The notes below the pieces were generated by a model. It had not been told where the DNA came from and did no database searches. It saw only the letters and a program-made list of their open reading frames with translations. A stretch of 64,000 nucleotides of DNA from IMG/VR virus record IMGVR_UViG_3300025770_000870, positions 62,001-126,000 of that record; one strand, given 5' to 3'. Positions 1,773-19,300 of this stretch are shown in pieces. The position numbers were made by a program, and so were the translations under genes. The first letter of the stretch is position 1; every line of letters begins with the position of its first letter.

Positions 1773-1808
1773 ATTATTATATATTACTTAGTTCTGAAAG
1801 ATGTTAAA

Positions 1809-3053: not shown

Positions 3054-3119
3054 TGACATATATATTAAAAATAAATACTAGATTTGATATACACAATTTG
3101 GCGAAATCATCAGAAATAC

Positions 3120-3152
3120 AAAAAGGCCCTGAGTAAAACTCAGAACCTTTTT
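3120..3152. terminator. Intrinsic terminator downstream of cspA
   Basis: AAAAGG-CCCTGAG-taaaa-CTCAG-aa-CCTTTTTT hairpin with A/T tails. Confidence 0.6.
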
Positions 3153-3178
3153 AATTGATTTTTCTAATTGATTTTTAA

Positions 3179-3376
3179 TTAATCAACTAACCCAACATCA
3201 ACAGCAGTCTTGCCTTTACGACCCTCACCTTCTGTGTATGTTACCTTATCAGATTCTCTTATCTCCACACCTTCTAATAGTCCTGTTATGTGTACGAAGA
3301 TATCTTCGCCTGTTTCATCATTATTAATGAATCCGAATCCTTTCGAATCATTGAAAAATTTTACTGTTCCTTGCAT
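3179..3376 (-). CDS. cspA: Cold-shock protein
   Basis: GTVKFFN..KGFGFI (RNP1) and DIFVH (RNP2); 65 aa. Confidence 0.95.
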   Translation of the reverse strand: MQGTVKFFNDSKGFGFINNDETGEDIFVHITGLLEGVEIRESDKVTYTEGEGRKGKTAVDVGLVD

Positions 3377-3505
3377 TATTTATTTATTTATTTTATTCTT
3401 TACTCAAAATGAGCTTGTTATTTACATTATACGTTGTTATTATAATTAGTTTAATAATTTATCATTTTTTTACGATACACAATTATAAAATTATAAATAA
3501 GTTTT

Positions 3506-3514
3506 TAATATATA
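3506..3514 (+). promoter_or_regulatory. TAATATATA putative phage late-promoter box (representative of ~33 copies seen)
   Basis: Recurs in sense orientation, usually 4-6 nt before start codons, including before structural genes. Confidence 0.75.
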
Positions 3515-3518
3515 CTTT

Positions 3519-3929
3519 ATGAATCATATAAAATCATATAAAATATTTGAATCCGAGTTGGGTTATGTTAGTAAACCAATCGATATAAAGTTCGATATAA
3601 AGACTGCTAAATTTGATTATAATAGAAATACAAAATATAGACATGGTATTGATAGGGTTATTAATGATGATGAAATAATTGAAATTGTCGAAAAGGGTAT
3701 GGAAAAATTAACCATTGATTTGATGAATGATAATTTGGATATTGGTGATAGATTCGTGTTGAAAGGTGAGGGTTTTGATGGTGATATGTTAAATTTAGTT
3801 TGTCAGTTAAATCCTGGTGAGAATTTTTTCACATTGATGATCATAACTGCTATGCGTAAAGAGGATTTCACAGGACATAGAAATCAATATATCTTGAATG
3901 TAGATACACAACAACATCATTACGAATAA
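3519..3929 (+). CDS. Leader-tagged hypothetical protein
   Basis: MNHIKSYKIFES leader; TAATATATA at 3506-3514. Confidence 0.75.
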   Translation: MNHIKSYKIFESELGYVSKPIDIKFDIKTAKFDYNRNTKYRHGIDRVINDDEIIEIVEKGMEKLTIDLMNDNLDIGDRFVLKGEGFDGDMLNLVCQLNPGENFFTLMIITAMRKEDFTGHRNQYILNVDTQQHHYE

Positions 3930-4759
3930 TGAGATATTTAAATAAATATAATATCTATAAAGGTGATTTCTTGTTAGAAAGTTTGAATGAGTCTATTGAT
4001 GTAGGTTCTTTTACATCTAAAATAAAAAATTATCTAAGTAATTTGAATAAGAATCAAATAAAAGAATACTATAAAAAATTCATTGAAAAGGTATCAAAAC
4101 TACCAAAAACAACAAAAAAGGCTATTTTAATAGGAGTTATACCAATATTTGCGTTAAATCTTAGTTCTGCTGACTTAGAACAATCAAGTGATCCAGTTGT
4201 TATAGAGGTTGTTAGTGAAGTAGAAACTTTAGAAGTGCAAGAACCAGTAGAAGAAATTGTAGAAGATAATTTCAAAAAAGGTTATGATTTTGTTTTAACA
4301 CAAAACGGGTGGGATTCTATACGAGATGAAGAGAAATTAAGATTATATCCGTATGATATAGGTGATGGTAAAATAACAGTTGGATGGGGACATGCCGAAG
4401 ATATCACTACATCTAAATATAAGATAGGTAATAAGATAAGTAAAGAGGAAGCTCAGAAATTATTAAAAGATGATTTGACATTAGCTGCTGATGCTGTTAG
4501 GCAAGTTTTCGTGGAGTGGAAAGAGAAGGATATAGATGTTGAAATAACACAAGATATGTTTGATGCTTTAGTTTCAATAACATTTAACATTGGTGTTGGT
4601 GGTATGAGAAATTCGGACTTTATACAAGACTTAAAGAAAGGAGATTATAAAGCTTGTGCTAATAGTATGAGAATACATAAGAGTAATCTATTTGAGAAGT
4701 TCCCTGGGTTAGAAACAAGACGAGGTAGAGAAGCTGATATTTACTTGAAAAATTATTAA
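3929..4759 (+). CDS. GH24 phage lysozyme with N-terminal leader and hydrophobic segment
   Basis: E.E.LRLYPYD.GDG.ITVGWGH catalytic motif; FDALVSITFNIG; GL..RR..E. Confidence 0.9.
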   Translation: MRYLNKYNIYKGDFLLESLNESIDVGSFTSKIKNYLSNLNKNQIKEYYKKFIEKVSKLPKTTKKAILIGVIPIFALNLSSADLEQSSDPVVIEVVSEVETLEVQEPVEEIVEDNFKKGYDFVLTQNGWDSIRDEEKLRLYPYDIGDGKITVGWGHAEDITTSKYKIGNKISKEEAQKLLKDDLTLAADAVRQVFVEWKEKDIDVEITQDMFDALVSITFNIGVGGMRNSDFIQDLKKGDYKACANSMRIHKSNLFEKFPGLETRRGREADIYLKNY

Positions 4760-4779
4760 ATAAAAAAATAAATAATATC

Positions 4780-5061
4780 ATGAAGACGGAAGAAGAATTA
4801 TCAAAAGAAAGTCAACCACAATATTTCACTTGGTTGTGGAGGAATAAAAAAACAGAGATATTACTTACCTTTGTTGGTATTGTATCATGTATTTTAACTA
4901 CACCGATAATACTAGATCCTATGAACGAAAACCCAATTATTGTAATGATTTTAGCTTTTATTGCAATATATGGATTTACTGTTGGTATGGCATTACAACC
5001 ATACACAATATATAAAAAATTAGTTAAGATGAATTATTGGTCACGTAATTCTCCTTATTAG
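4780..5061 (+). CDS. Two-TM membrane protein next to lysozyme
   Basis: Two hydrophobic segments; holin-like role possible but not demonstrable. Confidence 0.6.
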   Translation: MKTEEELSKESQPQYFTWLWRNKKTEILLTFVGIVSCILTTPIILDPMNENPIIVMILAFIAIYGFTVGMALQPYTIYKKLVKMNYWSRNSPY

Positions 5062-5079
5062 AAATAATATATAGAAAGT

Positions 5080-5376
5080 ATGAAATACTTAAAGACATTT
5101 GAAAATTATGGAATAGTAGAATCTGTTTCTTTCAATAGAAAGGATAAGGCTAGAATACTAACATTAAATGATAGAGCTACTGATGAGGATCACTTAATTA
5201 GACTAGCTGTTAATATGGCGAACGCTATTGGTAGAAATGTTGAAAAAGGAAGTGAGAACGAATATATCTCTGGTAAGAAAGCCTTTCAAAGAGGATTAGC
5301 AGCAGAAGATGAGAACTTCCACGAGGTAGCTCAGATATTTTTTGATAGAGCAAAAGAATTGGGATTCGAAGAATAA
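5080..5376 (+). CDS. Leader-tagged hypothetical protein
   Basis: MKYLKTFEN; TAATATATA at 5065-5073. Confidence 0.75.
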   Translation: MKYLKTFENYGIVESVSFNRKDKARILTLNDRATDEDHLIRLAVNMANAIGRNVEKGSENEYISGKKAFQRGLAAEDENFHEVAQIFFDRAKELGFEE

Positions 5377-6762
5377 TCATATAAATCTATACTTTTGAGA
5401 ATTATAATTTTTCTCGAATTGTTCTTGTGATAATTCCACACCCCCATGAATTGTCATTCCTAAAGTCTTTCCATTTAGAAAGTTTCCGACAGCAGACCTA
5501 TCACACCCAATATTGAATCCATTTGTAACGCTACTAGTCAATGTAGTTATAGTTATAGTATCTTCTAATACACCATTAATGTATAATTTAGCGTTTCCAT
5601 TTTCAACCGCTGAACATCCTATGTGATACCACGTATTTATTACAGGCGTAGTTGTAGCCGTCAAATTATCATTCACCGAAGCGTTTATTACAGTCGCTCT
5701 TAGTAAGTTTGGATTACCCGCATTAATCCTGATTAAAAAGTTTCTATTGTTAGCATTATCATTATATTCAGACCGATACTCGCCTAAAAATGCGTTTATA
5801 TAGATCCATTGCTCAAAACTAAAGGTAGATCCTATATCAGCAACAGGTAGAATCGGAAAACTTACATATTCGTCCGTGCCATCCATATCCAAAACCCCAT
5901 CGGTTATGGTTAAACCATTTCGAAGCTCTCCTATCATTGTTGGATCTACTATATTCTTTATCAGATTACTTCCCCACTTATTAGTAAGTTGATTCGACTT
6001 CGTAATTATTTGACTTGACGTGTACACACCTTCTGCTACGAACATTTCCCCGTAAAATATATTGCCTGATCCCGTTAATGTCGATTGACCGTGACCTAAA
6101 TAAGTAGCGCCTAAAGTCGCTAAAATAGCAGTTGCAGATGCGTTTATTGGTTTAGTTCCATAAGACACACCATCAACAAATAATTCCATTAACTTATTTG
6201 ATATTGATATTTTCAATGCGTAAATGTGTAAACTATCTATACTTTGGTCGGGTATTGTCCAAGTCGAAACTTCTTGCGTAGCCGTTCCTTGCCATTTATT
6301 AACACTCCTAAAAGTTGTTGATGTCGTGTGATTAATTGTTATTCCGTTAACTAATGGATTGATTGAAGTTGGCATTGAAAATATATTTCCATTGCTATAA
6401 TCGAATGTGGAATACATTATAAGTAACTCCAAAATACCATCTGCACTATATGAAGATGTTTGCACACCATTAGATGAGGTAACATCGTACCCGACACTTA
6501 AATTTCGATTGCTATAGTTCTCGTAAAATATAAACTCTTCGCCTACTGCCGAGGTTCCCGTATAGCCATTTCCACTTTGGTCGGGAACTACCAATATATT
6601 ATCGAGATTATTTAATCCCGTTATCTTAGAAAAATCCCAATGGAGTTTAATATTTGAATCAACTACATCTGGATAATTGGTTACCACAGATAGTTTATTA
6701 CCCGTATCAGATTGAAACGTTCCTGAACTTGTTATTGCTGATTTAAATCCTCCTGTGCTCAT
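5377..6762 (-). CDS. LamG/concanavalin A-like two-domain protein (tail fibre/receptor-binding)
   Basis: LDMDGTDEYV, FSFEQWI, WYHI, LYINGV and NYNSQKYRF motifs. Confidence 0.8.
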   Translation of the reverse strand: MSTGGFKSAITSSGTFQSDTGNKLSVVTNYPDVVDSNIKLHWDFSKITGLNNLDNILVVPDQSGNGYTGTSAVGEEFIFYENYSNRNLSVGYDVTSSNGVQTSSYSADGILELLIMYSTFDYSNGNIFSMPTSINPLVNGITINHTTSTTFRSVNKWQGTATQEVSTWTIPDQSIDSLHIYALKISISNKLMELFVDGVSYGTKPINASATAILATLGATYLGHGQSTLTGSGNIFYGEMFVAEGVYTSSQIITKSNQLTNKWGSNLIKNIVDPTMIGELRNGLTITDGVLDMDGTDEYVSFPILPVADIGSTFSFEQWIYINAFLGEYRSEYNDNANNRNFLIRINAGNPNLLRATVINASVNDNLTATTTPVINTWYHIGCSAVENGNAKLYINGVLEDTITITTLTSSVTNGFNIGCDRSAVGNFLNGKTLGMTIHGGVELSQEQFEKNYNSQKYRFI

Positions 6763-7490
6763 AAGTATCTATGTTTTTGTACTTCGTAATTATATAGTAT
6801 CTGTTCGGGAGTTAATACTGCACTATGTATAGTTGTTAGACCGAGAGTTCCTTGAAGTGTATATTGATTAAAGGCATTTAGTTGCAACCTACCTAATACC
6901 CATATATTATTTACTAAATCCGTACCGTACTGCGTTATGGGATTAATTGAATCGCTAACATCAGCAACCTTAACCCCATTAATAAACATTTCAGCATCCA
7001 ATACATCTGAGGGTGCAGTATAAACTATGTTCATCCAATCTCCTTGATTATAAGGAACTGTTGCGGGAATAGACCCATTACCCGAACCACCTTTTATTAA
7101 CTGATTAAGGCAATTAACCGACACTTCATTTGATGCTGCTTGTCCACTATTTCGACCCATACTTATTACCACAGCACCGCTTGAGCGACTTATGATATAT
7201 GAACTAAAGATATTTCTTTCTTCTTGAACCCAAGTGGAAAGTGTATAAGGTCTATCTGCTGCTCCTAAAGTTATTTGTGCTAATGGACTACTCGCTACAT
7301 TCACTTGGTCATCGACACCATCAAAAACTATACCTTTGTCAGAGAATGTTGTACCATTTTCTAAAAGGAGTTCTCTATGCTCAACAACATCTCTTATAGT
7401 AGTAGCGTCTTTACGCATAATTAAATTAGCACCATCAAAAGAGTACCTTAGATTGTCCTTTACTATTGATTTACGTGCGAAGTGTCCCAT
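6759..7490 (-). CDS. LamG-like protein
   Basis: IVKDNL...FDGVDDQV, YTLSTWV, MFINGV, NYEVQKHRY. Confidence 0.8.
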   Translation of the reverse strand: MGHFARKSIVKDNLRYSFDGANLIMRKDATTIRDVVEHRELLLENGTTFSDKGIVFDGVDDQVNVASSPLAQITLGAADRPYTLSTWVQEERNIFSSYIISRSSGAVVISMGRNSGQAASNEVSVNCLNQLIKGGSGNGSIPATVPYNQGDWMNIVYTAPSDVLDAEMFINGVKVADVSDSINPITQYGTDLVNNIWVLGRLQLNAFNQYTLQGTLGLTTIHSAVLTPEQILYNYEVQKHRYL

Positions 7491-7491
7491 C

Positions 7492-7752
7492 TTATCCTTC
7501 TATAAGCCCTATTGGTAATGTCCATTCTACCGTTGCCATTACTGCTAATATCTCTTCGTGAGTGTATGTAGGTATGGTTGGTGTAATTACTGATACACTA
7601 CTTGGTATATCTCCCTCCCATTTTAATACAAATTCTGTTTCATCAATATTCTTACGAACTGTATCAGCAGATGTCTGTTGGACTTGTGAATAATCTACGT
7701 TATTTAATTCAGCTATCGGTGCTATTGCGTATGTCTTATTATTGTGTGCCAT
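7492..7752 (-). CDS. Small phage protein associated with LamG fibre cassettes
   Basis: VDYSQV.QTSADTVRK...FVLKWEG..P...YTHEEIL..M...EW pattern; position inside the cassette. Confidence 0.7.
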   Translation of the reverse strand: MAHNNKTYAIAPIAELNNVDYSQVQQTSADTVRKNIDETEFVLKWEGDIPSSVSVITPTIPTYTHEEILAVMATVEWTLPIGLIEG

Positions 7753-7760
7753 AACTTTCT

Positions 7761-8480
7761 TTAATTTATATATCTTGATTTTTGTGCTTCGTAATTATCT
7801 AGTGCTTCTGCTTGGGTTAATTCTTTGTTGTAGATAACTAACTTTTTAAGACTTCCTTCTAAATAATTTGCAGACTCGTTAAATCTTCTACCGATTACAA
7901 ATCTAGCATTTGCACCAATCGCTATTGGAGAAGCACTTAAAGTATCATAGAATGTGACTAAAGTATCTTCAACGCCATCAGTATAAATGTGTATGCCCGA
8001 AACTAAACTACTACCATCATAAGTAACTACGTGGTGGTGTATTCCATCGTTATACGTGTTTGTTGTTCTTACTGCAACCCCATTAGTAGTCGGTGTATTA
8101 ACTAAACTGAAACCTAAAGCACCTAAAGGGGTATTTCGATATAACACTCCCCAACCTCTGTATGAATTATCAGTTCCTTGTCTGCCACATACCCAATCAA
8201 ATACCGAACCCGTAGATTTATCTATCCAAAATTCAATAGTAAATGAATCAGTCCTCTCGAACTTGGCAAAGTCTTCATCAGCAAAATCAATCCATTGGTC
8301 AACACCATCAAGTTCCATTCCATCATCAACTACTGTAATTCCGTTTTGAAAAGTTCCATCATTACGAGCCACTAAGTCACGAATGGTACTGCCTGAATTC
8401 GGATAAGATACTTTATTGTCAGCATCTATAAGTAACCCAGAATTTGTTACTATTGGTATTTTATGATAGTGTACTCCCAT
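7761..8480 (-). CDS. LamG-like protein
   Basis: DA.N..SYP.SG, LDGVDQWI, FTIEFWI, HHVVTYDG, IYTDGV, NYEAQKSRY. Confidence 0.85.
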   Translation of the reverse strand: MGVHYHKIPIVTNSGLLIDADNKVSYPNSGSTIRDLVARNDGTFQNGITVVDDGMELDGVDQWIDFADEDFAKFERTDSFTIEFWIDKSTGSVFDWVCGRQGTDNSYRGWGVLYRNTPLGALGFSLVNTPTTNGVAVRTTNTYNDGIHHHVVTYDGSSLVSGIHIYTDGVEDTLVTFYDTLSASPIAIGANARFVIGRRFNESANYLEGSLKKLVIYNKELTQAEALDNYEAQKSRYIN

Positions 8481-8494
8481 AATTATGATATTTT

Positions 8495-9172
8495 TTATAC
8501 TATTGTTGTGTTAAATACACTTGTTACTATCCACGCAGCTACTGTTGCCTCATATATTAGTTCTACTGAATCTCCTATATCGTTAAATGTTATAGTTGTA
8601 TATCCTAAAAGGCTTGTGGGTGTTAGTGTTACTTTATCAGTAGGATCACCTTCAGTAGTATATAATATTGTTATTCTCTGACCTTCAATACCATTTGGTA
8701 AGTCTAAAAAATCTGATGTGGTTGTGGTTGTTATTTTAGTAATACTTTTTGTAACATCTATACTTGCTGTAGTTCCTGTTGATGTTATGGTATAACTATT
8801 TAGATTTACGTCTATTGTGTTTGTGCTTAAAGTAGTATCTCCCGTCACATCATTATAGTTTAACTCTAAAGGAACACCACTCGTTTGAAATGGATTTCCC
8901 ATTTGAATTAACCAATCGGCATCCGCATACATAATATCATTACCACTTACATCGGCTACTCCAAATAGTTGACCATCTTTATCGTCAGTGATTGTGAATA
9001 GACCTCCCGTAGTTCCATCAAAAGTAATGTTAGAAGCAGCAACTCCTGCTGTTGCTGATTGAACAATTTTAATAGCGTCAGATTCCAATGCCGCAGTTGA
9101 TATAAACTTTAAATCACCATCTAGTTTTATATCACCATCTAGTATTTCCGCATTTCCGTATATTTTTGCCAT
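8495..9172 (-). CDS. Putative tail fibre/virion structural protein
   Basis: Thr/Gly-rich beta-type sequence heading the LamG operon; TAATATATA at 9223-9231. Confidence 0.6.
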   Translation of the reverse strand: MAKIYGNAEILDGDIKLDGDLKFISTAALESDAIKIVQSATAGVAASNITFDGTTGGLFTITDDKDGQLFGVADVSGNDIMYADADWLIQMGNPFQTSGVPLELNYNDVTGDTTLSTNTIDVNLNSYTITSTGTTASIDVTKSITKITTTTTSDFLDLPNGIEGQRITILYTTEGDPTDKVTLTPTSLLGYTTITFNDIGDSVELIYEATVAAWIVTSVFNTTIV

Positions 9173-9285
9173 ATCCCGTTATTTATTTTACAATCGACTT
9201 AAAATATATAATTGTAATATAGTATATATTAATTTTTTAATAAAAAATAGTTTGTGTTTCTAAATAATACGAAAAATAAATAAAA

Positions 9286-9981
9286 TTACTTACAGTGATA
9301 ACAATTCTTACCAAAATTTTCACACCATTGGTCTATTGTGCAGAAAGCTTCCATATATTTAATATATCCCCTTAACCCTTGGCATATAAATTTATCCCAG
9401 TAATTATACTTTATTGTATAATTCCATAAATCAATTTCACTCCAATTATACTTATCTTTTATATACTTAGCCACTTGATATCCAGTTCTATCAGCACCGG
9501 CTGTGCAGTGTATAAGAACTTTACCCCTTCTTAAATATGGTTGTATAATATCTAAGGATTCAACATAACCACTATCTTTCTTATAACCCAAATGTGCATT
9601 AACCCATACAAACTTTTTACCTAAACTTTCAACCAATTTTCTCTCAGAGTTAATACCAACACCAGTACCTTCTAACGCATTCATTCTAACTACAACATCT
9701 ATATCATAATTAGTTATTATTGACTTTAATTGAGATAGTGATGGTTGGTTTGTTCTAAAAACATTGTTACCACCAGGAACAGTATCAAATTTAGATGGTA
9801 GGTTATTTATCCTAATAAATGTGTCCTTTACAACCTCACCCACCTCATTGTTATTTTCAACATTTTCAGTTAATTTATAATTACTAATAGAAACACCTTG
9901 ATTATTTGAATAAATTGATAAAATTATAAAACTTGATATAAGTAATAAAGATGATATTAATATAATATTTATTCTTGACAT
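9286..9981 (-). CDS. Protein tyrosine/dual-specificity phosphatase with N-terminal membrane anchor
   Basis: VLIHCTAGADRTG P-loop (CX5R); FRTNQP; hydrophobic N-terminus. Confidence 0.85.
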   Translation of the reverse strand: MSRINIILISSLLLISSFIILSIYSNNQGVSISNYKLTENVENNNEVGEVVKDTFIRINNLPSKFDTVPGGNNVFRTNQPSLSQLKSIITNYDIDVVVRMNALEGTGVGINSERKLVESLGKKFVWVNAHLGYKKDSGYVESLDIIQPYLRRGKVLIHCTAGADRTGYQVAKYIKDKYNWSEIDLWNYTIKYNYWDKFICQGLRGYIKYMEAFCTIDQWCENFGKNCYHCK

Positions 9982-10069
9982 ATGATATATATCACACTAA
10001 AAATATGTATATTGTATTTATAGTTGAAACTATTTAAAATTAGTTACATATACAATAAAAATAAAAATT

Positions 10070-10288
10070 ATGAAAGATTACAAAAAATGGACAGAAGACG
10101 AAGTAGCTTTAGTTAGAGCTGCAATTAAAAACAATGCAGAGGATATGAACTATCTAACCAAAGCACTTAACAGAACAGAGGGTAGTGTATCTTGTAGATT
10201 GGGAAGGGAAAGAATGTCAATGGGTTTAGAATCAAACTATACTGGTGAAACTATTGGTCATGTTAAGACAGAACCTATTTTAATATAA
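10070..10288 (+). CDS. Small HTH/Myb-like protein
   Basis: KKWTEDE...L.RTEGSV..RL pattern. Confidence 0.55.
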   Translation: MKDYKKWTEDEVALVRAAIKNNAEDMNYLTKALNRTEGSVSCRLGRERMSMGLESNYTGETIGHVKTEPILI

Positions 10289-10317
10289 ACAAATTAAAAA
10301 ATTATACTATAATTTTA

Positions 10318-10405
10318 GTCGATGAGGTGGTGTGGGTTACGCGATCCTTAGACGTAAGGATTGGTCTTAAATGGCTAATTAGGGTTCGATTCCCTGACAT
10401 CGACC
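10318..10405 (+). tRNA. Atypical tRNA-like gene (long variable arm, 8-nt anticodon loop, no encoded CCA); identity undetermined
   Basis: Acceptor GTCGATG/CATCGAC; D-loop with GG; ATCCT/AGGAT anticodon stem; TGGTC/GGCTA variable arm; TTAGGG-TTCGATT-CCCTGA T-arm. Confidence 0.7.
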
Positions 10406-10430
10406 TCCGGTTTTAATAAAGTTAGACAAG

Positions 10431-11267
10431 TTATGATAGTTGGTATTCGGAAAACTTCAATATCTTACTTTCATTGAAGTAATTATCCACTGGGTTTATT
10501 TCTTTGCTATATGATACCTCAGTTTCGATTTCTTCATCAGGAAATAGTTTAGGAAACTTTATATTCTTTATCTTATCTATAACTCTCTTAACCGCTAATA
10601 TACCAATATCATTAAATGATTTCAACCCTTTGATTATATCAACCATGAAATGTTTTATAGCAAAAACACCAACACCAATACCAGTTACTATTAATTTACC
10701 GACACCATCAGTAGATATCGCAGTTAAAATTGATGATATTGAAGTATCACTTTGTTGACCAATATCATTAAATATCAACGCAAATGGTACAAATAAGGCT
10801 GTATAAGCAAACATTTCACCAAAAGATGTTACTATTTTACCCAATTTAGATGATATAAAGTTAAAAACGTTCTTAATACCTTTCATTGATGTTATAAGTG
10901 GTTTTATTAAATGAAATATATTTTCATTCTTTAATTTGGTAATTAAGTCTTTATATTTCTCTTTAGGTTCACTTAATAAAATACCCATTAAACAAACAGT
11001 TAAATAAACAATACTTGATTTGGAAATCTCTTGTGGTAATTCCATTTCTGTTACAAGCTTCTCTATTATAGGATATAATCCCTTAACAGCTGGAGCGAAA
11101 ACAAACACAAATGAATATTCATAACCTAATTGATTCATAAGTTTTTTAACACTACCATCCGGTTCTTCCTTATTATGATGATGAACAGCTGCTTGTCCCG
11201 GTGTCTTATTTTCCAATAAAAAATTACATTCTCTTTCTGTGATATAATCACTATACTTATTAATCAT
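10431..11267 (-). CDS. Leader-tagged protein with hydrophobic helices
   Basis: MINKYSDYITE...FLLE; TTATATATA variant box 4 nt upstream; leader-like ILKFSEY repeated at the C-terminus. Confidence 0.7.
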   Translation of the reverse strand: MINKYSDYITERECNFLLENKTPGQAAVHHHNKEEPDGSVKKLMNQLGYEYSFVFVFAPAVKGLYPIIEKLVTEMELPQEISKSSIVYLTVCLMGILLSEPKEKYKDLITKLKNENIFHLIKPLITSMKGIKNVFNFISSKLGKIVTSFGEMFAYTALFVPFALIFNDIGQQSDTSISSILTAISTDGVGKLIVTGIGVGVFAIKHFMVDIIKGLKSFNDIGILAVKRVIDKIKNIKFPKLFPDEEIETEVSYSKEINPVDNYFNESKILKFSEYQLS

Positions 11268-11286
11268 ACACTATATATAAATATAT

Positions 11287-11376
11287 CTAGATACTTTTCG
11301 AAATGTTAGCGAATAGATATTTTATATCAAGTGTATTGATAGATTCGAATAATTTATATCAACTTATATACTTCAT
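11287..11376 (-). pseudogene. Truncated leader-family gene MKYIS*YKLFESINTLDIKYLFANISKSI*
   Basis: TAATATATA (11382-11390) then ATG; in-frame TGA at codon 6; LDIKY..F matches ORF 12596. Confidence 0.65.
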
Positions 11377-11414
11377 TGCTCTATATATTAATAACGAATT
11401 AGTATATTTGTTAT

Positions 11415-11540
11415 ATGAATTGGTACGACTAATTCACCCTATGTGAAGGTAGGTAAATTTCAAACATGACTTCTCCTCTCTGTTTGTTTCGCCTAGCTGA
11501 GCGAGCTCCACTTTTTTGTAGGAAGCGAATCAGTTTTTTT
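11415..11540 (+). ncRNA. Candidate structured small RNA or leader
   Basis: TATATTTG promoter at 11403-11410; consecutive hairpins; ends in a T-run; no long ORF. Confidence 0.4.
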
Positions 11541-11545
11541 ATTAT

Positions 11546-11812
11546 ATGATAATATTTAATACCATAAAGAAAGCAGAACATTATGTCTCCTACTGTAACA
11601 AGAAGGTTGATCGGGAAGAGGGTGGATATGATTGGTCCTCTGTAAGAACTTTTATAGAGGGTGAATATATTATATGCAATAGCTCCGGTGATGGTTGTGG
11701 TTGTGGGTGTGATGATTATATGTATGATTATAATGAAGTAATTGGTCGTATAAAATCGTATGATAAAAAAAGTATTCGTGGTAATAAACTAAAACAGATC
11801 ATCGGTTTTTGA
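11546..11812 (+). CDS. Hypothetical protein with C-terminal RxxK[IL] tag
   Basis: GCGCGC motif; ends IRGNKLKQIIGF. Confidence 0.7.
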   Translation: MIIFNTIKKAEHYVSYCNKKVDREEGGYDWSSVRTFIEGEYIICNSSGDGCGCGCDDYMYDYNEVIGRIKSYDKKSIRGNKLKQIIGF

Positions 11813-11880
11813 ACAGATTTGAACAGAAAAAAATCTACAATATCTCAATAAATAAATAATTTATATTAATATATATAAAT

Positions 11881-12390
11881 ATGTTATTAAAGTATAAACT
11901 TTTTTTAGAAAAAAAATTCGATTCTAGAAAAGATATTGAGGGTTATGTAGATGCCAATGAATTGGTTGGACAAAGACTTTGGTTTCATACCAATAGGACT
12001 AATCGTAATAACGGTAATAATGGGATGATTGGTGTTTATAGTACATCACCTTCTGGTAGAAAAAAGGGTTTAGCTGGTAGGTATACGAATGAAGTTAGAC
12101 TAACAGATCCTATTTTCTTTCAGACCTCAATAGCAGGATCTGATACTATAAAGGCTACAAAAAAGAGAGGTTTAATAGCAGGAGTTTCGGGTGTAGTTGT
12201 TGAAACAAATAATGATATAAATAATATGATTCCGATAACTTACAACCCCAACGAAAATGGGTATTTTCATGAGGTGGGAGATGTGGATGCAAAAGAAATA
12301 ATATCGGGTAGTGAGGTATATTTCAACTCAACAGAAGATGGACAATGGTTTATCTATGTGAAAAATCCCGTGTATCAATTACTCAAATAG
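11881..12390 (+). CDS. Leader-tagged hypothetical protein
   Basis: MLLKYKLFLE; TAATATATA at 11867-11875. Confidence 0.75.
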   Translation: MLLKYKLFLEKKFDSRKDIEGYVDANELVGQRLWFHTNRTNRNNGNNGMIGVYSTSPSGRKKGLAGRYTNEVRLTDPIFFQTSIAGSDTIKATKKRGLIAGVSGVVVETNNDINNMIPITYNPNENGYFHEVGDVDAKEIISGSEVYFNSTEDGQWFIYVKNPVYQLLK

Positions 12391-12595
12391 AAAATAAACC
12401 GAGTTCCGATTCAAATATTACTCCAAAAATATATAAGCCAAAAAATTGGTCGTTGAGTAGCACTGGATTTATAACAATACCAAATTATTGGATTGAAGGA
12501 AGACAACCAGATTTACGTTTAGATATCTACGACATATACTTTCTTAAAGTGGTAATATTAATTTATGATATGTTTATTTTTAATATATAACTATA

Positions 12596-13150
12596 ATGAA
12601 ACACCTTATAAGATATAATGAGTCTGATGAGTCTGATGATAATAAATTAGATATTAAGTATATAGAATCTTGCTTTGCTGAATTAATAGATAATTATATT
12701 GATTATAATAATGGTTATTTAGGAAGAAATAGTTGGACGAAAAATCCTATTACTAGTAGTTTAGAATATGGTGCTGAGGATTATTACAGTAATGAAAGTT
12801 GGTCTATTAGGTTATTACTTGAAGGAACACCAACAAATATGTCTGATGATCTATCCGATGGTAGTATAAAAACATCAGGGGTTCATAGATCATCATATAG
12901 AATTGGATATAAGTTAGGTAAGTTAGTCAAGGACGCAAATGAAAAACTTGAGATATTAAAGGAAATTGAAGTGGGTGTTAAACGAATTAAGGAAAAATAC
13001 CCATCATATAATATAGATTTCAATAAACAATTTACACATAGTAAGGATACACAAACCACGATACAAGAATTTATAGTTGTTGGTATTAGTCAACCACATT
13101 CAGATCGTTTACGACAGGTTAAATATAACTGGAAAGACGCGAATATTTAA
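12596..13150 (+). CDS. Leader-tagged paralog-family protein
   Basis: MKHLIRYNES; YIESCFAELID; TAATATATA at 12581-12589. Confidence 0.75.
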   Translation: MKHLIRYNESDESDDNKLDIKYIESCFAELIDNYIDYNNGYLGRNSWTKNPITSSLEYGAEDYYSNESWSIRLLLEGTPTNMSDDLSDGSIKTSGVHRSSYRIGYKLGKLVKDANEKLEILKEIEVGVKRIKEKYPSYNIDFNKQFTHSKDTQTTIQEFIVVGISQPHSDRLRQVKYNWKDANI

Positions 13151-13500
13151 AAGATAATTGTATTAATTTTATATCCTCTTTCAAACATTTTATAAGCTCT
13201 CAGAAAATCTTCTTGTTTCGTAAATAAGCTTATTAAATAGTTTTCAAATTCTACACCAGTGTAACCATCCATGAGCGAGTTTCTAATTCCTCCTACCTTT
13301 ATAACAATACCTTCATAATCAAAGACAGAATGATCAGTGTCTATATCAATACTAAAATTACTCAAAAGGAATCCTATGTGTTTCGCTTTTTCTAAGTATT
13401 CTAATCCGATTTTATCATCATAATCACCACACATTATATCATTGAGGTTTTCACTTAAACCTCCAAAAGTTTTAAATGGTGTTTTATCCAAATGTTTCAT
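13147..13500 (-). CDS. Hypothetical protein with C-terminal tag variant
   Basis: Ends ERGYKINTIIF; TATATTTG promoter at 13593-13600. Confidence 0.6.
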   Translation of the reverse strand: MKHLDKTPFKTFGGLSENLNDIMCGDYDDKIGLEYLEKAKHIGFLLSNFSIDIDTDHSVFDYEGIVIKVGGIRNSLMDGYTGVEFENYLISLFTKQEDFLRAYKMFERGYKINTIIF

Positions 13501-13624
13501 TTAATAAATTTACTGTGTATAATATAATCGACATACACATCAACCATATTAAAAACTTGTTAATATTTTCTTTATACTTTTTATACATATCACAAATATA
13601 AGGATTATTATTAATATATAACAT

Positions 13625-14056
13625 ATGAAACATCTCAAAAGAATAAATGAGTTATATCTAACATCAGATGTGTCTAGTGTTATAGATGATATATTATTGG
13701 AGATTAATGATATACCTAAGTTTGTTGGTCTTAATTGGAATCATACGGATCGTTTGGGTCGGGCATCTGAACATAGTTTTTTGGTTATTATTAAGTTGAG
13801 TGAGGGTATAGAAGATGGTATGGATTATGGTGTTGGTTTAGATGAGGAAATAACAGAAACTATTAAAAGGTTATTAGAATTTATGACAAGCAATCGATAT
13901 GAATACTTGATGGAATTTGGAACAGATAACATACCACCTGGTACTTCAAAAAAAGAATTAAGTGATTATATTAGGAAGTTTGAATATAGTGAATTATCTG
14001 ATAATGATTTAACTATGTGGGTGGATGAATTTATAAGAATAACTTTTACAAAATGA
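13625..14056 (+). CDS. Leader-tagged paralog-family protein
   Basis: MKHLKRINE; VIDDILLEIND; TAATATATA at 13612-13620. Confidence 0.75.
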   Translation: MKHLKRINELYLTSDVSSVIDDILLEINDIPKFVGLNWNHTDRLGRASEHSFLVIIKLSEGIEDGMDYGVGLDEEITETIKRLLEFMTSNRYEYLMEFGTDNIPPGTSKKELSDYIRKFEYSELSDNDLTMWVDEFIRITFTK

Positions 14057-14472
14057 GATACATGAAAACATATGAATCATTTGGGAATCCCTTTGGTAAC
14101 AGTCCGAGGGATAGACGAATCAAGTTGTACAGTTTCCCCAGGGCAACACTTTTACTTGAAATCGAGGATATTCTAAGAGAGTTAGAGGATAATAATATAC
14201 GTGTTGAGGTATATTTTTGGGATGGTGTTGAGGTTTTCTTAACCAGTAGAAACGAACATGAAGTTAGAAGAGGCTTACTAGCTCCTGATACATTCCCATA
14301 TGAGGTTATAAAACCTAATATAGAGCATCTAGTTTCTTTCTTAGAAGAAATTGGATATAAAATTAAAAGTATTCATAATATTGTTAATCTTGAATCAAGA
14401 GGATCAATAACTCAATATCCTGATTTGGATGGTGAAGAAATAGGTAGATTGGAATTTAGATTTATCAAATAA
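14053..14472 (+). CDS. Leader-tagged paralog-family protein
   Basis: MRYMKTYESF; IEDILRELED; ATGA overlap. Confidence 0.75.
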   Translation: MRYMKTYESFGNPFGNSPRDRRIKLYSFPRATLLLEIEDILRELEDNNIRVEVYFWDGVEVFLTSRNEHEVRRGLLAPDTFPYEVIKPNIEHLVSFLEEIGYKIKSIHNIVNLESRGSITQYPDLDGEEIGRLEFRFIK

Positions 14473-14653
14473 TTAATTACTTTATAAACAATACAACATT
14501 TAATTTTTAGTTCCATTTTTCTAATTCATATTCCTTTAAGGTTATCCAAATACCAAGTATTCTATGTTGTAAAGCTCTAGTAGTAACTAAACAAGTTGCC
14601 TTGCGGTTTCGGATAGTAAAAATATTTTTAGTTTTTATTCTATACATAGTTAA

Positions 14654-15013
14654 TTATTTTAAAATACTATTGATTTTTTCATCACGAATCTCTAATAGTA
14701 GTTGATCTTTATCAAACTCAGGGTAAGCAAATTCACCGACACATACTTGTGTGTGTCCATCTTTGACATAGAGTTCCCAAGCATCTCCAATACCTTGTCC
14801 AATACCAGATATCTTAAAAATATTATCTGGTTTGGTTTTAGAAAATTTAATTATATCTTCTTCGTATGAATACCACTCACACCATGAATCTGCGTCTGAA
14901 TCACCATATCTATCAAAGGCGTATTTAGCACTATCAGAAAAATTTCTAAATTTATTAATTAACTTATTACTACCCTCCACAATAGTAAATTGATACTTTG
15001 TTAAATATGACAT
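14654..15013 (-). CDS. Hypothetical phage protein with C-terminal tag
   Basis: Probable start MSYLTKY; ends EIRDEKINSILK. Confidence 0.7.
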   Translation of the reverse strand: MSYLTKYQFTIVEGSNKLINKFRNFSDSAKYAFDRYGDSDADSWCEWYSYEEDIIKFSKTKPDNIFKISGIGQGIGDAWELYVKDGHTQVCVGEFAYPEFDKDQLLLEIRDEKINSILK

Positions 15014-15070
15014 TAAACCAAATCTTTTATATCTTTGAATAAAAATAATAATCACCCCTCGATAATATCA

Positions 15071-15274
15071 TTAAACTTTATATTTTTCAAGGTAAGTATC
15101 AAATGTTTTATCACATAAATCATTTCTAAAACCTTTAATAATAGTCTTATAGAAATATCCCGTATGTCTTTTAGCATACAAGTCAATAACATTACTAGCG
15201 TTACCGCAATCATTCATAGTTTCACAACCAGAAATAATTTCAGTTACTTTATCAATTTCAAAATCTGTGTTCAT
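15071..15274 (-). CDS. Hypothetical protein
   Basis: 67-aa ORF; TACATTTG promoter at 15310-15317. Confidence 0.6.
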   Translation of the reverse strand: MNTDFEIDKVTEIISGCETMNDCGNASNVIDLYAKRHTGYFYKTIIKGFRNDLCDKTFDTYLEKYKV

Positions 15275-15355
15275 AGTTTATATTTTTTAATTATTACTTT
15301 ATTTATATACAAATGTAAGGATATTATCATACTAATACAAATTAATATATACTTT

Positions 15356-15496
15356 ATGGAAGGAATGAGGAAAATTATTATGTTTAGTCTTGTAATGATA
15401 GTGTTAAGTTCTTGTGGAGTACTCAAGGGTGGTAAAGGTAAATGTGAGTGTGAGGACTGGGGTCGAAGAGAGTCTGAAAAGACTGATAGTGTATGA
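15356..15496 (+). CDS. Small lipoprotein
   Basis: MRKIIMFSLVMIVLSSC lipobox; TAATATATA at 15343-15351. Confidence 0.6.
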   Translation: MEGMRKIIMFSLVMIVLSSCGVLKGGKGKCECEDWGRRESEKTDSV

Positions 15497-15882
15497 AATA
15501 CCTAAAAAAATTCAATGATATAAGATTCGAAATAGAAGAATCTGATTCAACTAAAATACGTATGTATGATGTTGATGAAAAAGTTGGTTATTCATCAGTA
15601 ACTATAAAGGATAATATTTTTGATAAATGGAATTTACATGATGATTTAGAAGTTGATCCGATAAAAAATACTAAAAGCTTATACATTCTAGGAATATCAA
15701 TGAGGAATAGGAGAACAGGTTATGGTTCTAATTTAATAAACTATATTGAGGAATATGCTAATAAGAAAGGATGTGAATACATCACACTAAGTTCTATTAC
15801 CGATGCTTTGGGGTTCTGGAAAAAAATGGGATATGAAGTTTATAGTATGGGTGATTACTATTCAATGTATAAGAAGTTATAA
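15493..15882 (+). CDS. Leader-tagged GNAT acetyltransferase
   Basis: MKYLKKFND; RRTGYGSNLI acetyl-CoA motif; ALGFWKKMGY. Confidence 0.85.
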   Translation: MKYLKKFNDIRFEIEESDSTKIRMYDVDEKVGYSSVTIKDNIFDKWNLHDDLEVDPIKNTKSLYILGISMRNRRTGYGSNLINYIEEYANKKGCEYITLSSITDALGFWKKMGYEVYSMGDYYSMYKKL

Positions 15883-15905
15883 ACCTTATTGATATTGCTT
15901 ATATA

Positions 15906-16229
15906 ATGTTTATGGATTTAGTAGAAATAAGATATGTTGGTGATAAGAGTTGGTCAGTTGTAACTCGATTCTTAGCAACAGGGATGTCTGGGATTGAAAT
16001 GAGAGAGATTGATAAAAATGGACCTAAATTAACTCTAATCAACAATCTAAATAAAGAATTTATCAAAGAGCGTACTTGTAATTGGGAGAAGGAGGATTAT
16101 GAATACACAACACCATGTGGTGTTAATTTCGATTGTGATAAAGTTACTAAAATTAACGATAATAACCTTGGTTATGTCCTCCACTACTGTCCAAATTGTG
16201 GTGGTAAGTTAGATTTAAATCTAATTTAA
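15906..16229 (+). CDS. Zn-ribbon protein
   Basis: TPCG...YCPNCGGKL. Confidence 0.6.
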   Translation: MFMDLVEIRYVGDKSWSVVTRFLATGMSGIEMREIDKNGPKLTLINNLNKEFIKERTCNWEKEDYEYTTPCGVNFDCDKVTKINDNNLGYVLHYCPNCGGKLDLNLI

Positions 16230-16238
16230 ATCTATTGG

Positions 16239-16706
16239 TTAACTTTTACCTATTCTCCATGCGTTTTTAACAACTCTTTTAATTTTAGTAGAATCTTCAT
16301 AGTTACCAATTACGACACCATCTTTGATAGTGAATGCGTGTGATGTAACTTGTAGTATGTAAGTACCTTTATCATATTCTTTTATGAAAGTACCAACAGT
16401 CATTTTACTCTTACCATTGTTAGTTTTTAAGTGGTTTTTATTAATGGTATTTACCGTTTTTCGATTTAATCTAAGGTTATCATTATTCATACCATTCATA
16501 CCTGGTGCGAATCCATATGTTCCTTTTTTATTTTTACGGCTGAATTTATTACAGACCCATTTATGTGATTTATCGTATGTCATACCAGATGCGGATGCAA
16601 TGGCTCTAACAACACAGTCATTATTTTCTTTTTTAGCAATAACCGAATCTCTGTATCCGTTAATCGCGGCTGATGAAGATGTATAAGGAATTTTTTTTGT
16701 TTTCAT
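16239..16706 (-). CDS. Conserved phage protein (NDCVVRAIA...HA), possible papain-like fold
   Basis: Cys in DCVVRA and His in SHAF. Confidence 0.6.
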   Translation of the reverse strand: MKTKKIPYTSSSAAINGYRDSVIAKKENNDCVVRAIASASGMTYDKSHKWVCNKFSRKNKKGTYGFAPGMNGMNNDNLRLNRKTVNTINKNHLKTNNGKSKMTVGTFIKEYDKGTYILQVTSHAFTIKDGVVIGNYEDSTKIKRVVKNAWRIGKS

Positions 16707-16759
16707 AGTAGTGATTTTTATTTCTACTAAGATACGGAATTTATATCAATTAAAAAAAT

Positions 16760-17272
16760 TTATTTATTAAGTATTTTATTAAGTTTAGTATCTCTTAGTG
16801 TTGATTTACCTATAATATTGTGTATTTTCTTCATTGATTTATCACAATTATCTTTTGAATTTTTATTAAATTCATTTTTATAATCAGCATACTTTTGGTA
16901 AAAGAATTTATAATCTTTTTCCTTTATATCTCCTTTGTGTGAGAAGAAGGTACCAGCTGATAAATAGATTGCGGATATTGTAAATATCCCACCTTCAATT
17001 TTATACTTTACTTTTAAGTCTACCTTATTTTTAGAAAATTTTATTTCTTCATAGTTCACTCCCAAATCCCAATTATCAATTTGTACTGAATGGAATATGT
17101 CCTCGAATGTGTCTTCAATATATTTGTCCTCGTTGAAGCTTTTTATTTCAACAAATTCATCCTTTATGTTTTTTGGAATTACTTTTGATTTTTTTCCTTT
17201 ATTCATCTTAATACCCAAATAGGAATATGTACATAATATGGCAATAATTCCTATAAGTAATAATATATTCAT
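16760..17272 (-). CDS. Membrane-anchored protein with C-terminal tag
   Basis: N-terminal TM; ends LRDTKLNKILNK. Confidence 0.7.
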   Translation of the reverse strand: MNILLLIGIIAILCTYSYLGIKMNKGKKSKVIPKNIKDEFVEIKSFNEDKYIEDTFEDIFHSVQIDNWDLGVNYEEIKFSKNKVDLKVKYKIEGGIFTISAIYLSAGTFFSHKGDIKEKDYKFFYQKYADYKNEFNKNSKDNCDKSMKKIHNIIGKSTLRDTKLNKILNK

Positions 17273-17289
17273 TTTGTAATTTTTTTTAA

Positions 17290-17480
17290 TATTGTTTTCA
17301 TTAAAGTAGTCTAATGAAAGATTAACTTACTGATATCAATGAACCTCACTGTGTTGAATTTAACAGACTCTTTAAGAGGTTTGATAGTCTTAGTAGTATT
17401 CTCTATAATAGTTAGCTCAGTCCTCTAAAAAGACACCCAGTTGTGATTCTTAGTCTATCAACCGGGTTATTGTTTTCATT
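17290..17480 (-). ncRNA. Structured intergenic element bounded by a 13-bp direct repeat
   Basis: TATTGTTTTCATT at 17290-17302 and 17468-17480; nested stems between them. Confidence 0.45.
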
Positions 17481-17481
17481 T

Positions 17482-17955
17482 TTATTTTTCAAAATAATCA
17501 GTTAATTCATCCTTCAATATCTCTCTATATTTTAGAGTTCCTATTCCGTTATCTAGATAAATCCATATTATTGGTTTCATTTTACTAATGAATTCTCTCA
17601 TTTCATCAGTAGCAACTTCTGACCACCTTTCATCTAAGACAGATAAATTATCAACCTTGATGTAATATCTACTACCAACTTTACAACTACCAGATGGGAT
17701 TTCTTTTATACAAGTATATAACTCAACCAAATCATTATCGATATCGATATTACATTTAATATCTTCTTCTTTAGATAATTCAGATTTTAAATCTATAAGA
17801 TCTGTCTTATGTTTGAGCAAATACTCTTTAATAATTGGATCATTATCATCAAAAATATTTAATGCGTTAGTTAATACTACATGTTTGTTTTCTAAATTAG
17901 CAGCATTCTCAAAGTCTGATTCGAATTGTTCTATTGTGTAAGAAGTTTCTATCAT
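17482..17955 (-). CDS. Hypothetical protein
   Basis: 157-aa ORF in a minus-strand run. Confidence 0.7.
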   Translation of the reverse strand: MIETSYTIEQFESDFENAANLENKHVVLTNALNIFDDNDPIIKEYLLKHKTDLIDLKSELSKEEDIKCNIDIDNDLVELYTCIKEIPSGSCKVGSRYYIKVDNLSVLDERWSEVATDEMREFISKMKPIIWIYLDNGIGTLKYREILKDELTDYFEK

Positions 17956-17991
17956 GTGTATAATTTTAGAGGGGATATTAACCCCCTATTT

Positions 17992-18180
17992 TTACGAAAG
18001 AATACCTTTTCCAAGAATAAGTGGAGAAGCATCTTTGTTTGTTGTTATGGTAAAAAGATTTTCATATTCCTTTATGATAAGAGCTTTATCACCGAACATT
18101 TTTTTATAGTTCTCTCTAGCATAAGCTTCAACTTCATCTCTTACTGAATCTTCCATTATAATTTCTTCTTTTCTTTTCAT
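17992..18180 (-). CDS. Hypothetical protein
   Basis: 62-aa ORF. Confidence 0.6.
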   Translation of the reverse strand: MKRKEEIIMEDSVRDEVEAYARENYKKMFGDKALIIKEYENLFTITTNKDASPLILGKGILS

Positions 18181-18229
18181 TTCTTTTCTTTTTATAGGTT
18201 TATAATTGAATACAAAAATACAAATCTAT

Positions 18230-18487
18230 TTAATATATTCCTAATTTATTTAACTTTTTTATTCTATTATTAATTTTTTTTATTCTATACTGAGTATTTT
18301 TATAATTATTCATTATACAACTCTTCATAACAAGAGCCATATAGTCAAACTCTTTAGTGTTCTTGTTTGGTTTATAATGATGATAATGGTGTAACTTGGT
18401 TTTGTTAATAATGTCTTTTTTATTAATAAACCCAGTTATACCTGAATTTTTGACCAACCTTTCATATAAATCATCAAAATCTAACAT
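18230..18487 (-). CDS. Hypothetical protein with tag-like C-terminus
   Basis: Ends NRIKKLNKLGIY. Confidence 0.6.
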   Translation of the reverse strand: MLDFDDLYERLVKNSGITGFINKKDIINKTKLHHYHHYKPNKNTKEFDYMALVMKSCIMNNYKNTQYRIKKINNRIKKLNKLGIY

Positions 18488-18496
18488 TTTATAAAA

Positions 18497-18694
18497 CTAC
18501 TTTCCATTTATATTTGATGCTATTGACAAAACCTCATAACTACAACCATTATCAGAATTTTCATTCATAACTTCAGCAAGTTTATTTGCTACGTTTACTT
18601 GTGGTATTTCTAATACCTCACTATAACCATTTGTTAAAAATACATGGCTCTTCTTACCACTTTTGATAAGGGTTTTTTTAATTACATAAATCAT
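18497..18694 (-). CDS. Hypothetical protein
   Basis: 65-aa ORF. Confidence 0.65.
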   Translation of the reverse strand: MIYVIKKTLIKSGKKSHVFLTNGYSEVLEIPQVNVANKLAEVMNENSDNGCSYEVLSIASNINGK

Positions 18695-18757
18695 ATTTCT
18701 CTATTTTTTAATTTTCAATTATACAAAAAGTCTATTTTATAAATATAAGTAAATTAT

Positions 18758-19015: not shown

Positions 19016-19043
19016 TTTATTATTTTTATCTATTACTATTTGA

Positions 19044-19277: not shown

Positions 19278-19300
19278 ATAACAAAGATAAGGAAAATATA

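Follow-up and report, generated by a model that had tools for sequence, protein, structure and literature searches.

A tRNA-Leu-like element with a self-complementary anticodon loop in a marine phage of about 0.5 Mb, tentatively read as a non-decoding tRNA mimic

Bacillus cereus tRNA-Other, mascRNA and the tRNA-like domain of the bacterial YrlA Y-RNA have degenerate decoding parts, and a non-ribosomal role has been proposed or shown for them. They have the tRNA shape in common with the element described here, with no sequence relationship to it. Phage tRNAs are now regarded as weapons against host defences that cleave tRNAs, examples being T5 tRNA-Lys with PARIS, tRNA-Tyr with the retron Eco7 effector, and anticodon-loop variants (PMC11464382, PMC11555353, PMC10264068). 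The documented cases found are working decoders, standing in for host tRNAs lost to cleavage. The present element is likewise phage-encoded, has an altered anticodon loop and may belong to a conflict between phage and host over tRNAs; unlike those decoders it is unlikely to decode, and it could therefore act only as a decoy or sponge. By analogy it would be a phage-encoded, tRNA-Leu-derived example of a non-translating mimic. If this is true, a phage tRNA with a closed anticodon represents a different tactic (decoy, sponge or amino-acid carrier), and the element offers a simple handle on the host or phage protein that binds such an RNA.

The element lies in the window, the 64,000-nt stretch of DNA that was analysed (positions 62,001 to 126,000 of IMG/VR record IMGVR_UViG_3300025770_000870, below G000), between two convergent open reading frames, where it fills most of their 142-nt gap. 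The features of the region are, in window coordinates:

10070-10288, plus strand: upstream ORF, 72 aa, weakly matching an HTH-type regulator, ending 30 nt before the element
10286-10313, plus strand: sigma-70-like promoter match (TAAACA, 16-nt spacer, TATAAT) from a consensus scan only, in AT-rich DNA
10318-10404, plus strand: the entire element, a tRNA-like class-II cloverleaf of 87 nt with 26 uninterrupted pairs and no mismatches
10318-10324 (GTCGATG) and 10398-10404 (CATCGAC), plus strand: acceptor stem, 7 Watson-Crick pairs
10325 and 10326, plus strand: A8, then G9, by sequence reading
10325-10343, plus strand: D-arm region including A8, G9 and G26, numbered by alignment to the tRNA-Leu D-arms of relatives
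10327-10329 (GTG) and 10340-10342 (CGC), plus strand: D-stem, 3 bp
Between the D-stem strands, plus strand: D-loop GTGTGGGTTA, 10 nt, containing GGG and read as G13, T14, G15, then GGG
10344-10348 (ATCCT) and 10357-10361 (AGGAT), plus strand: anticodon stem, 5 bp
10349-10356, plus strand: anticodon loop TAGACGTA, 8 nt, in which T.A and A.T closure is possible, leaving GACG
10344-10361, plus strand: anticodon arm ATCCT-TAGACGTA-AGGAT, in which GACG is flanked by a perfect 7-nt inverted repeat
10362-10366 and 10373-10377, plus strand: long variable arm with the loop TTAAAT and 5 pairs, 2 of them G.U
10379-10397, plus strand: T-arm, TAGGG / TTCGATT / CCCTG, in which an extra pair, T10379-A10397, gives 6 pairs
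10405-10408, plus strand: 3' trailer CTCC, no encoded CCA
10431-11267, minus strand: convergent ORF of 278 aa, hydrophobic, no family match, its stop codon 27 nt from the element

The first-pass annotation of this DNA had listed a good acceptor stem, a GG in the D-loop, a long variable arm and a TTCGATT T-loop, and all of these are present. The peculiarities it pointed out can be read directly from the letters as well: an 8-nt anticodon loop that can pair with itself to leave GACG and lacks U33, a 6-bp T-stem, A at position 8, and no encoded CCA. The acceptor pairs have probabilities of 0.96-0.99 (ViennaRNA), the terminal pair being G10318:C10404, and the acceptor and T helices stack to 13 layers (7/6, or 8/5 with an A.A mismatch). 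Class-II tRNAs normally have a 3-bp D-stem. T14, at 10331, matches A8 in a swapped version of the usual U8/A14 tertiary pair; with the T-loop, which follows TTCRANY (TTCGATT), and the D-loop GG (GGG), this 8-14 pair is among the canonical tRNA features of the element.

The 242-kb source record is a fragment of a marine phage genome of about 490 kb with a T4-type portal and terminase. Position 1 of the 483-kb IMG/VR record G001 is position 62447 of G000, and from the two assembly sizes, 483 kb and 493 kb, the genome is estimated at about 0.5 Mb; the first 62 kb of G000 had no match in the compared parts of G001 (1-20000 and 179001-483262). Translation with standard code 11 suits the genome and shows no sign of reassigned stop codons, and a role of the element in stop-codon recoding or as a suppressor was rejected for that reason. 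Next to the portal gene lies one for a full-length exoribonuclease of the RNase R/II type, with RNB, CSD2 and S1 domains (G000:195727-197691, L013:13727-15691, minus strand). The relatives are the Mahaphage-clade genomes LR745206.1 (634,780 bp) and LR756502.1 (642,428 bp) and a 385-kb IMG/VR record (G016); Bacteroidetes hosts have been predicted for the 634-kb and 642-kb ‘Mahaphage’ genomes (PMC7162821). The relatives bear tens of tRNA genes in arrays, with 41 RF00005 matches in G016 and 10-19 genes per examined locus in LR745206.1 and LR756502.1. The phage itself has four or five canonical tRNAs (Arg(tct), Cys, Met, Gln) and three aberrant tRNA-like genes, the present element included, and ARAGORN found no tmRNA in its genome.

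Detection by standard programs is marginal. The ARAGORN check proposed at first pass came out negative at default settings, which gave no call for the element in the window, and positive at the 95% threshold (it is found with both -ps95 and -ps90), where an 87-nt ‘tRNA-?(gacg)’ and the one standard tRNA-Arg(tct) of the genome are the sole calls. An ARAGORN parse with a 3-nt ‘intron’ (tRNA-Thr agt) was discarded, the intron not being credible. Rfam at gathering scores, RF00005 included, gives no match to the element; under relaxed thresholds the best family is tRNA-Sec (RF01852), at 25 bits and E 0.0046 in a 221-nt search, against a gathering score of 47. The Rfam tRNA scores of other tRNAs of the lineage are mostly 40-72 bits.

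These misses at trusted thresholds, together with about 0.2 ARAGORN hits in each of 10 simulated genomes of the same size at the 95% threshold, are what speaks for a chance cloverleaf without biological meaning, a reading that is hardly credible. The element has a canonical GGTTCGATTCC T-arm besides the D-loop GGG, its D-arm and variable arm are like those of relatives' tRNA-Leu genes scoring 30-31 bits, and it sits exactly within the intergenic gap. At 48% GC in a genome of 29-30% GC it also falls in the top 0.66% of the genome's 87-nt windows. A sequencing or assembly error behind the 8-nt loop is ruled out, since three independent assemblies carry the identical 87 nt: G001, a 492,776-nt JGI contig, and the contig of a strain diverged by 1.2%. 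The locus was found in marine, seawater and brine metagenomes of about 16 studies.

The nearest sequences are leucine tRNAs. A covariance model (R1) built from the element itself gave as best non-self matches two class-II genes of LR756502.1, tRNA-Leu(caa) at 31.2 bits and tRNA-Leu(taa) at 29.7 bits, and the element's variable arm resembles that of the latter. Among the tRNAs of G016 the best global alignment is with tRNA-Leu(tag), at 61 identical positions. The alignable parts are the D-arm (GG.GG...GG.U.ACGCG), G26, the start of the variable arm (UGGUC) and the T-arm. The relatives' genes (LR756502.1 402816-402898 and 403934-404015; G016 262385-262469) share with the element the class-II cloverleaf, a 3-bp D-stem followed by CGC-G26, a D-loop of the same length with GG, a variable arm starting TGGTC, the GGGTTCGA.TCCC T-arm and the lack of an encoded CCA. 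On the strength of such comparisons, the element is a descendant of a class-II tRNA-Leu. Its nearest tRNA-Leu genes are of paralog type and have normal 7-nt loops, which would agree with a derived function as well as with a relic.

The differences from these genes are concentrated in a few places. The relatives have 7-nt CUNNNAA or CUNNNGA loops, U8/A14, A73-C74 and a 7/5 acceptor/T stack, whereas in the element the loop is self-complementary and of 8 nt, positions 8 and 14 are A and U, a C follows the helix and the layers number 13. The 13 layers are reached through A10397, an extra base between T-stem and acceptor strand relative to the tRNA-Leu homologs, which pairs with T10379. The whole anticodon arm differs from that of the relatives, and the stems differ at most positions. 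Identity marks recognized by E. coli LeuRS include A14 and A73, and A73 is found in 13 of the 13 lineage tRNA-Leu genes shown. The element retains the long variable arm, the 3-bp D-stem and the sequence similarity of a class-II tRNA-Leu, and of the identity marks it has no 7-nt loop with a Leu anticodon (NAG or YAA), T at position 14, and C after the acceptor helix. By the E. coli rules, with A14 and A73 changed, its Leu identity is probably gone. The exchange at positions 8 and 14 is another matter: three relatives have conserved tRNA-Thr(tgt) genes that carry this A8/U14 and are ordinary in other respects, so the swap appears to be tolerated and looks compensated rather than broken.

The anticodon loop is not that of a canonical elongator tRNA. 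Canonical loops have 7 nt, with U33 and purine 37; TAGACGTA has A second and T seventh, that is, A instead of U at the equivalent of position 33 and U instead of a purine at that of position 37. ViennaRNA favours closure of the loop by 3 kcal/mol, with pair probabilities of 0.94-0.99, to give a 7-bp stem capped by GACG, and the anticodon arm in isolation is predicted to fold as an 8-pair hairpin with the GACG tetraloop. The first-pass argument that a gene with intact stems and a closed loop is no ordinary decoder is borne out by this closure and by the lack of U33 and purine 37; judged from the folding model, the element probably cannot read codons. The roles put forward at first pass, as a decoy of nucleases or synthetases or as an aminoacyl donor, are conjectural. 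The four-base-anticodon tRNA that had been offered as an alternative found no support. None of 51 candidate +1 ORF junctions, from about 546 kb of phage sequence, has an in-frame CGUC, and code 11 fits. The loop does have the 8 nt of a quadruplet reader, and it is predicted to be closed with a probability of at least 0.94. In the same 546 kb (approximately) the anticodon hairpin occurs only once, and the idea of a repeated regulatory motif was rejected accordingly.

A working decoder with an expanded loop, either a triplet reader of odd geometry or a GACG quadruplet reading CGUC with a +1 frameshift, is nonetheless conceivable on account of the company that the element keeps, if improbable. 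The lineage maintains 8-nt anticodon loops. A Glu-like tRNA family, with a variable hairpin inserted in the D-loop, has the invariant 8-nt loop CUUUUCGG in six genes from three genomes, and its anticodon stems show compensatory changes (GTAAC/GTTAT, GTAAT/ATTAC, GTCAA/TTGAT). Its members are:

G001:312993-313089 and 314029-314124 (loci L148/L106): Glu-like genes of this phage
LR745206.1 420096-420191, 421291-421386 and about 421464-421559: Glu-like genes
G016 about 283005-283100, and 282845-282921: Glu-like genes, the second a short copy with the loop CTATTCAG

Beside the Glu-like CTATTCAG, the further 8-nt loops of G016 are the Tyr-like GTAGTAAC and the Met-like AGACATAG, each with an extra base before the anticodon. 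An 8-nt loop able to decode is known from yeast mitochondrial tRNA-Thr(UAG) (PMC7609411). This tRNA, suppressors of the sufD/sufA6 type and the Glu-like CUUUUCGG tRNAs all combine, like the element, an 8-nt loop with an intact tRNA; in contrast to the element, they have a pyrimidine resembling U33 and, on the 3' side of the anticodon, a purine, and U33 and purine 37 are kept in most 8-nt loops of the lineage. The element's loop, U-A-G-A-C-G-U-A, is set apart by two Watson-Crick closing pairs flanking GACG, for which the closure probability is the one given above. Decoding is further disfavoured by the empty +1 junctions, by the absence of any sign of a changed genetic code, and by a discriminator and position 14 that no longer fit LeuRS rules, as generally known for E. 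coli.

The long Glu-like copies are mis-parsed by ARAGORN as ‘Phe’ or ‘?(atac)’ tRNAs with a long variable arm. Reading the apparent variable arm as the true anticodon arm is correct for the two Glu-like genes of the phage; for the element this parse was rejected, since the variable region would then measure 2 nt and the stem would be weak. The loop motif TTAGACGTAA was also seen upstream of the T-loop in four unrelated viral tRNA-like sequences; this recurrence was set aside, being within rough chance expectation, and in at least one of the sequences the motif lies in the variable region. An unrelated phage tRNA on the minus strand of IMGVR_UViG_3300004777_000042 (L130, about 3830-3915; Rfam tRNA 34 bits, UCU loop) is very short in its D region and carries TTAGACGTAA in the variable arm; the 10-mer recurs about 120 nt upstream.

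By defining features the element is not a tRNA-Sec, tRNA-His, allo-tRNA or tmRNA. Bacterial tRNA-Sec (RF01852), in the architecture described in PMC7609411, has a 13-bp acceptor/T domain and a long variable arm, as does the element; the UCA anticodon and G73 of tRNA-Sec are absent, its D-arm has 6 bp and a 4-nt loop where the element has 3 bp and 10 nt, and the element's 25 bits fall well below the gathering score of that family. The allo-tRNAs, as described in the literature, have a 12-bp acceptor domain (8/4 or 9/3), as against 13 layers (7/6 or 8/5). A tmRNA has a tRNA-Ala-like end with G3:U70 and a tag reading frame, whereas the 3-70 pair of the element is C-G.

The comparison with tRNA-His is less simple. 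An N73-C74 end without CCA is found in 86 of 90 distinct lineage tRNAs, and C10405 fits this pattern only if C10404 is position 73. In that frame G10318:C10404 followed by C10405 makes a tRNA-His-type end (G-1:C73-C74), on a 13-layer helix of the kind typical of tRNA-His; among the 90 lineage tRNAs, C73-C74 occurs only in three tRNA-His genes, each with an encoded G-1. The D-arm homology instead makes G10318 position +1 and places the extra base on the 3' side, so that the two frames disagree. The GUG anticodon and class-I body of tRNA-His are both missing from the element, and its T-loop is Leu-type, unlike that of tRNA-His. Two phage genes bear on the fate of such an end:

G001:398660-399025 (L186:1381-2583): homolog of the CCA-adding enzyme/PcnB-family nucleotidyltransferases, 400 aa
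G001:280806-281414 (L189:1306-1941): HisRS catalytic core, 211 aa

The first fits tRNA genes that have no encoded CCA. The second matches the hisS model at positions 2-146 and 231-312, and thus lacks the insertion and anticodon-binding domains; motif 2, RGLDYY and GFAIG.DRL are present and the motif-3 Arg is replaced by Ser (motifs read by hand). No tRNA-His gene was found in this phage. A His-type end, a HisRS core without its anticodon-binding domain and the missing tRNA-His suggest that the element could be an anticodon-independent amino-acid acceptor serving a non-ribosomal or deliberately miscoding purpose, which is very unlikely. Speculatively, the HisRS core and the element would together give a histidine-charged RNA of tRNA-Leu shape that decodes oddly or not at all. 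The core also has homologs in the relatives LR745206.1 (94% identical) and LR756502.1 (82%), and hence is no partner dedicated to the element; a homolog in Sinorhizobium phage Phosso is 45% identical. In LR745206.1 the gene for the core is found about 1.4 kb downstream of a tRNA array whose first two genes are tRNA-His.

Mimic or leftover of lost tRNA genes is the choice to which these observations lead. The best reading is that the element is a structurally maintained, non-decoding tRNA mimic, an interpretation to be held tentatively; its main rival, an unused tRNA-Leu pseudogene left from lost tRNA arrays and not yet eroded, is possible and yet somewhat doubtful. The mimic is favoured by 26 pairs without a mismatch in stems that differ from those of the nearest tRNA-Leu, by the class-II tRNA-Leu genes found as best non-self matches, by an A8/U14 pair that is a tolerated swap rather than damage, and by the predicted closure of the loop. 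It is favoured too by the phage's CCA-adding enzyme homolog, and by the fact that the phage dropped its tRNA arrays yet keeps this element and two other aberrant tRNAs, of a type that is conserved in relatives with covariation.

That same loss of tRNA genes, from tens in the relatives to Arg, Cys, Met, Gln and three aberrant genes, is equally what a pseudogene would come from. Several canonical rules failed at once (the loop, position 73, the extra base at 10397), and 25 bits on the tRNA-Sec model is a low score beside the Rfam tRNA scores of the lineage; scoring under the trusted ARAGORN and Rfam thresholds counts against the mimic. A recently disabled gene, moreover, could still show intact stems. 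Against disuse, not one of the 26 pairs is broken and the exchange at 8-14 is a compensated one, when about 5 random lesions would be expected to strike the 52 paired bases, and GC stays at 48% in a genome of 29%. In the strain diverged by 1.2%, 3 substitutions fall in the 55 intergenic flank bases (10307, 10410 and 10427) and 0 in the 87-nt element. This contrast, from one diverged strain (Fisher P ~0.056), is a marginal sign of constraint and suggestive only; it accords with the mimic and runs against a relic. Were the element a relic only, it would document the loss of tRNA arrays in megaphages.

Distribution weighs on the other side. Searches with exact or degenerate DNA patterns on three anchors in viral, metagenome and genome collections found orthologs only in the same phage species, the covariance model found none in 50 related IMG/VR records or in either complete Mahaphage genome, and none came to light with the neighbouring proteins as anchors; a BLAST of the element against cultured phages gave no significant match. 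The lack of an ortholog outside one phage species in the collections and relatives searched counts against the mimic. Synteny around the element is not conserved in G016 or LR745206.1. The closest complete relative has no ortholog, and the equivalent spot in LR745206.1, upstream of the homolog of ORF 11546-11812, is taken by a normal tRNA-Arg(tct), as a relic would have it. An origin as an att-site fragment of a host tRNA was rejected: across about 185,000 species genomes 0 bacterial tRNAs share the T-loop and the 3' acceptor strand, and 39 of 39 matches are non-tRNA.

As a mimic, the element would keep the parts that fold the L shape, namely the acceptor/T minihelix, the elbow of T-loop and D-loop GG, the compensated 8-14 pair and the long variable arm, and these would let it be handled as a tRNA end. 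It would have given up the parts for leucine and for decoding (A14, A73, U33 and purine 37), its loop zipping up into a 7-bp stem with a GACG tetraloop. Transcription might start at its own promoter-like site or run on together with the upstream ORF; RNase P and 3' nucleases would trim the RNA, and the CCA could come from the phage's own CCA-adding enzyme. The mature mimic would then occupy tRNA-binding proteins that are blind to the anticodon, either host tRNA-directed defence nucleases or an anticodon-blind synthetase.

The placement of the element, which shares the strand of ORF 10070-10288, follows its stop codon by 30 nt and sits between convergent genes, with no intrinsic terminator predicted within 9900-10700, would also suit a cis-acting RNA processing or stability element, in which an RNase P cut sets the 3' end of the mRNA or insulates the convergent units. 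Such a role needs only the acceptor, T and elbow parts, which are the preserved ones. The arrangement of a tRNA-shaped module 3' of a 72-aa ORF resembles that of MALAT1 and mascRNA, and the mascRNA model does match the element weakly; that match, at 15 bits, is far under threshold. The anticodon and variable arms are perfectly paired too, which such a role does not require, no other example was found in the phage genome, and a separate promoter-like site lies just upstream. Processing in cis as the reason for the element is quite improbable. The promoter-like site ends 5 nt upstream of the element and would set the start of transcription near 10319-10321; the scan of the region gave 11 sites against 6.1 expected and the site is hence weak evidence. 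A single RNA-library contig at the locus covers 10016-10186, part of the upstream ORF region.

No functional link of the neighbouring genes to the element was found, and this too counts against the mimic. The 278-aa ORF at 10431-11267 has a weak homolog in G016. Just upstream of the element, at 5377-6762, 7761-8480 and 9286-9981 (all on the minus strand), are genes for two concanavalin-like lectin/glucanase (Laminin_G_3) proteins and a phosphatase-like protein, the Pfam matches of the latter (dual-specificity/tyrosine phosphatase families) being below cut-off.

The lineage context, that is, the conserved 8-nt loops, extra tRNA hairpins and a minimal HisRS, may outweigh this one gene, and these features suggest that tRNA architectures beyond the textbook rules are tolerated, or exploited, by huge phages. 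In the arrays of the relatives, class-I Lys, Glu, Asn, Thr and Ala tRNAs occur as twin copies, one at normal length and one of 80-87 nt whose variable region has an additional hairpin; for Leu anticodons there are class-II genes and also genes of 74-76 nt that lack the long arm. The twin-copy arrays are at:

G016 244.9-246.2k, 254.4-257.3k and 262.0-263.6k
LR745206.1 about 342.5-344.0k, and 388-390k
LR756502.1 about 401.5-404.5k

A four-copy repeat of the marine flavobacterium SCB49 (L213, L216, L237, L251) has a T-arm-like GGGTTCGATTCC followed by CATCGAC, and ARAGORN makes no tRNA call on it. A Met(CAT)-type tRNA of G016 (254407-254503) carries an apparent 23-nt insertion in its anticodon loop, CTAGG CTCAT[...]AA CCTAG; the insertion starts TTTAGAC, of which TTAGAC is common to the loop region of the element. 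A further gene of G016, at 370132-370204, is a CUA-anticodon tRNA of the amber-suppressor type, labelled ‘Pyl’ by ARAGORN.
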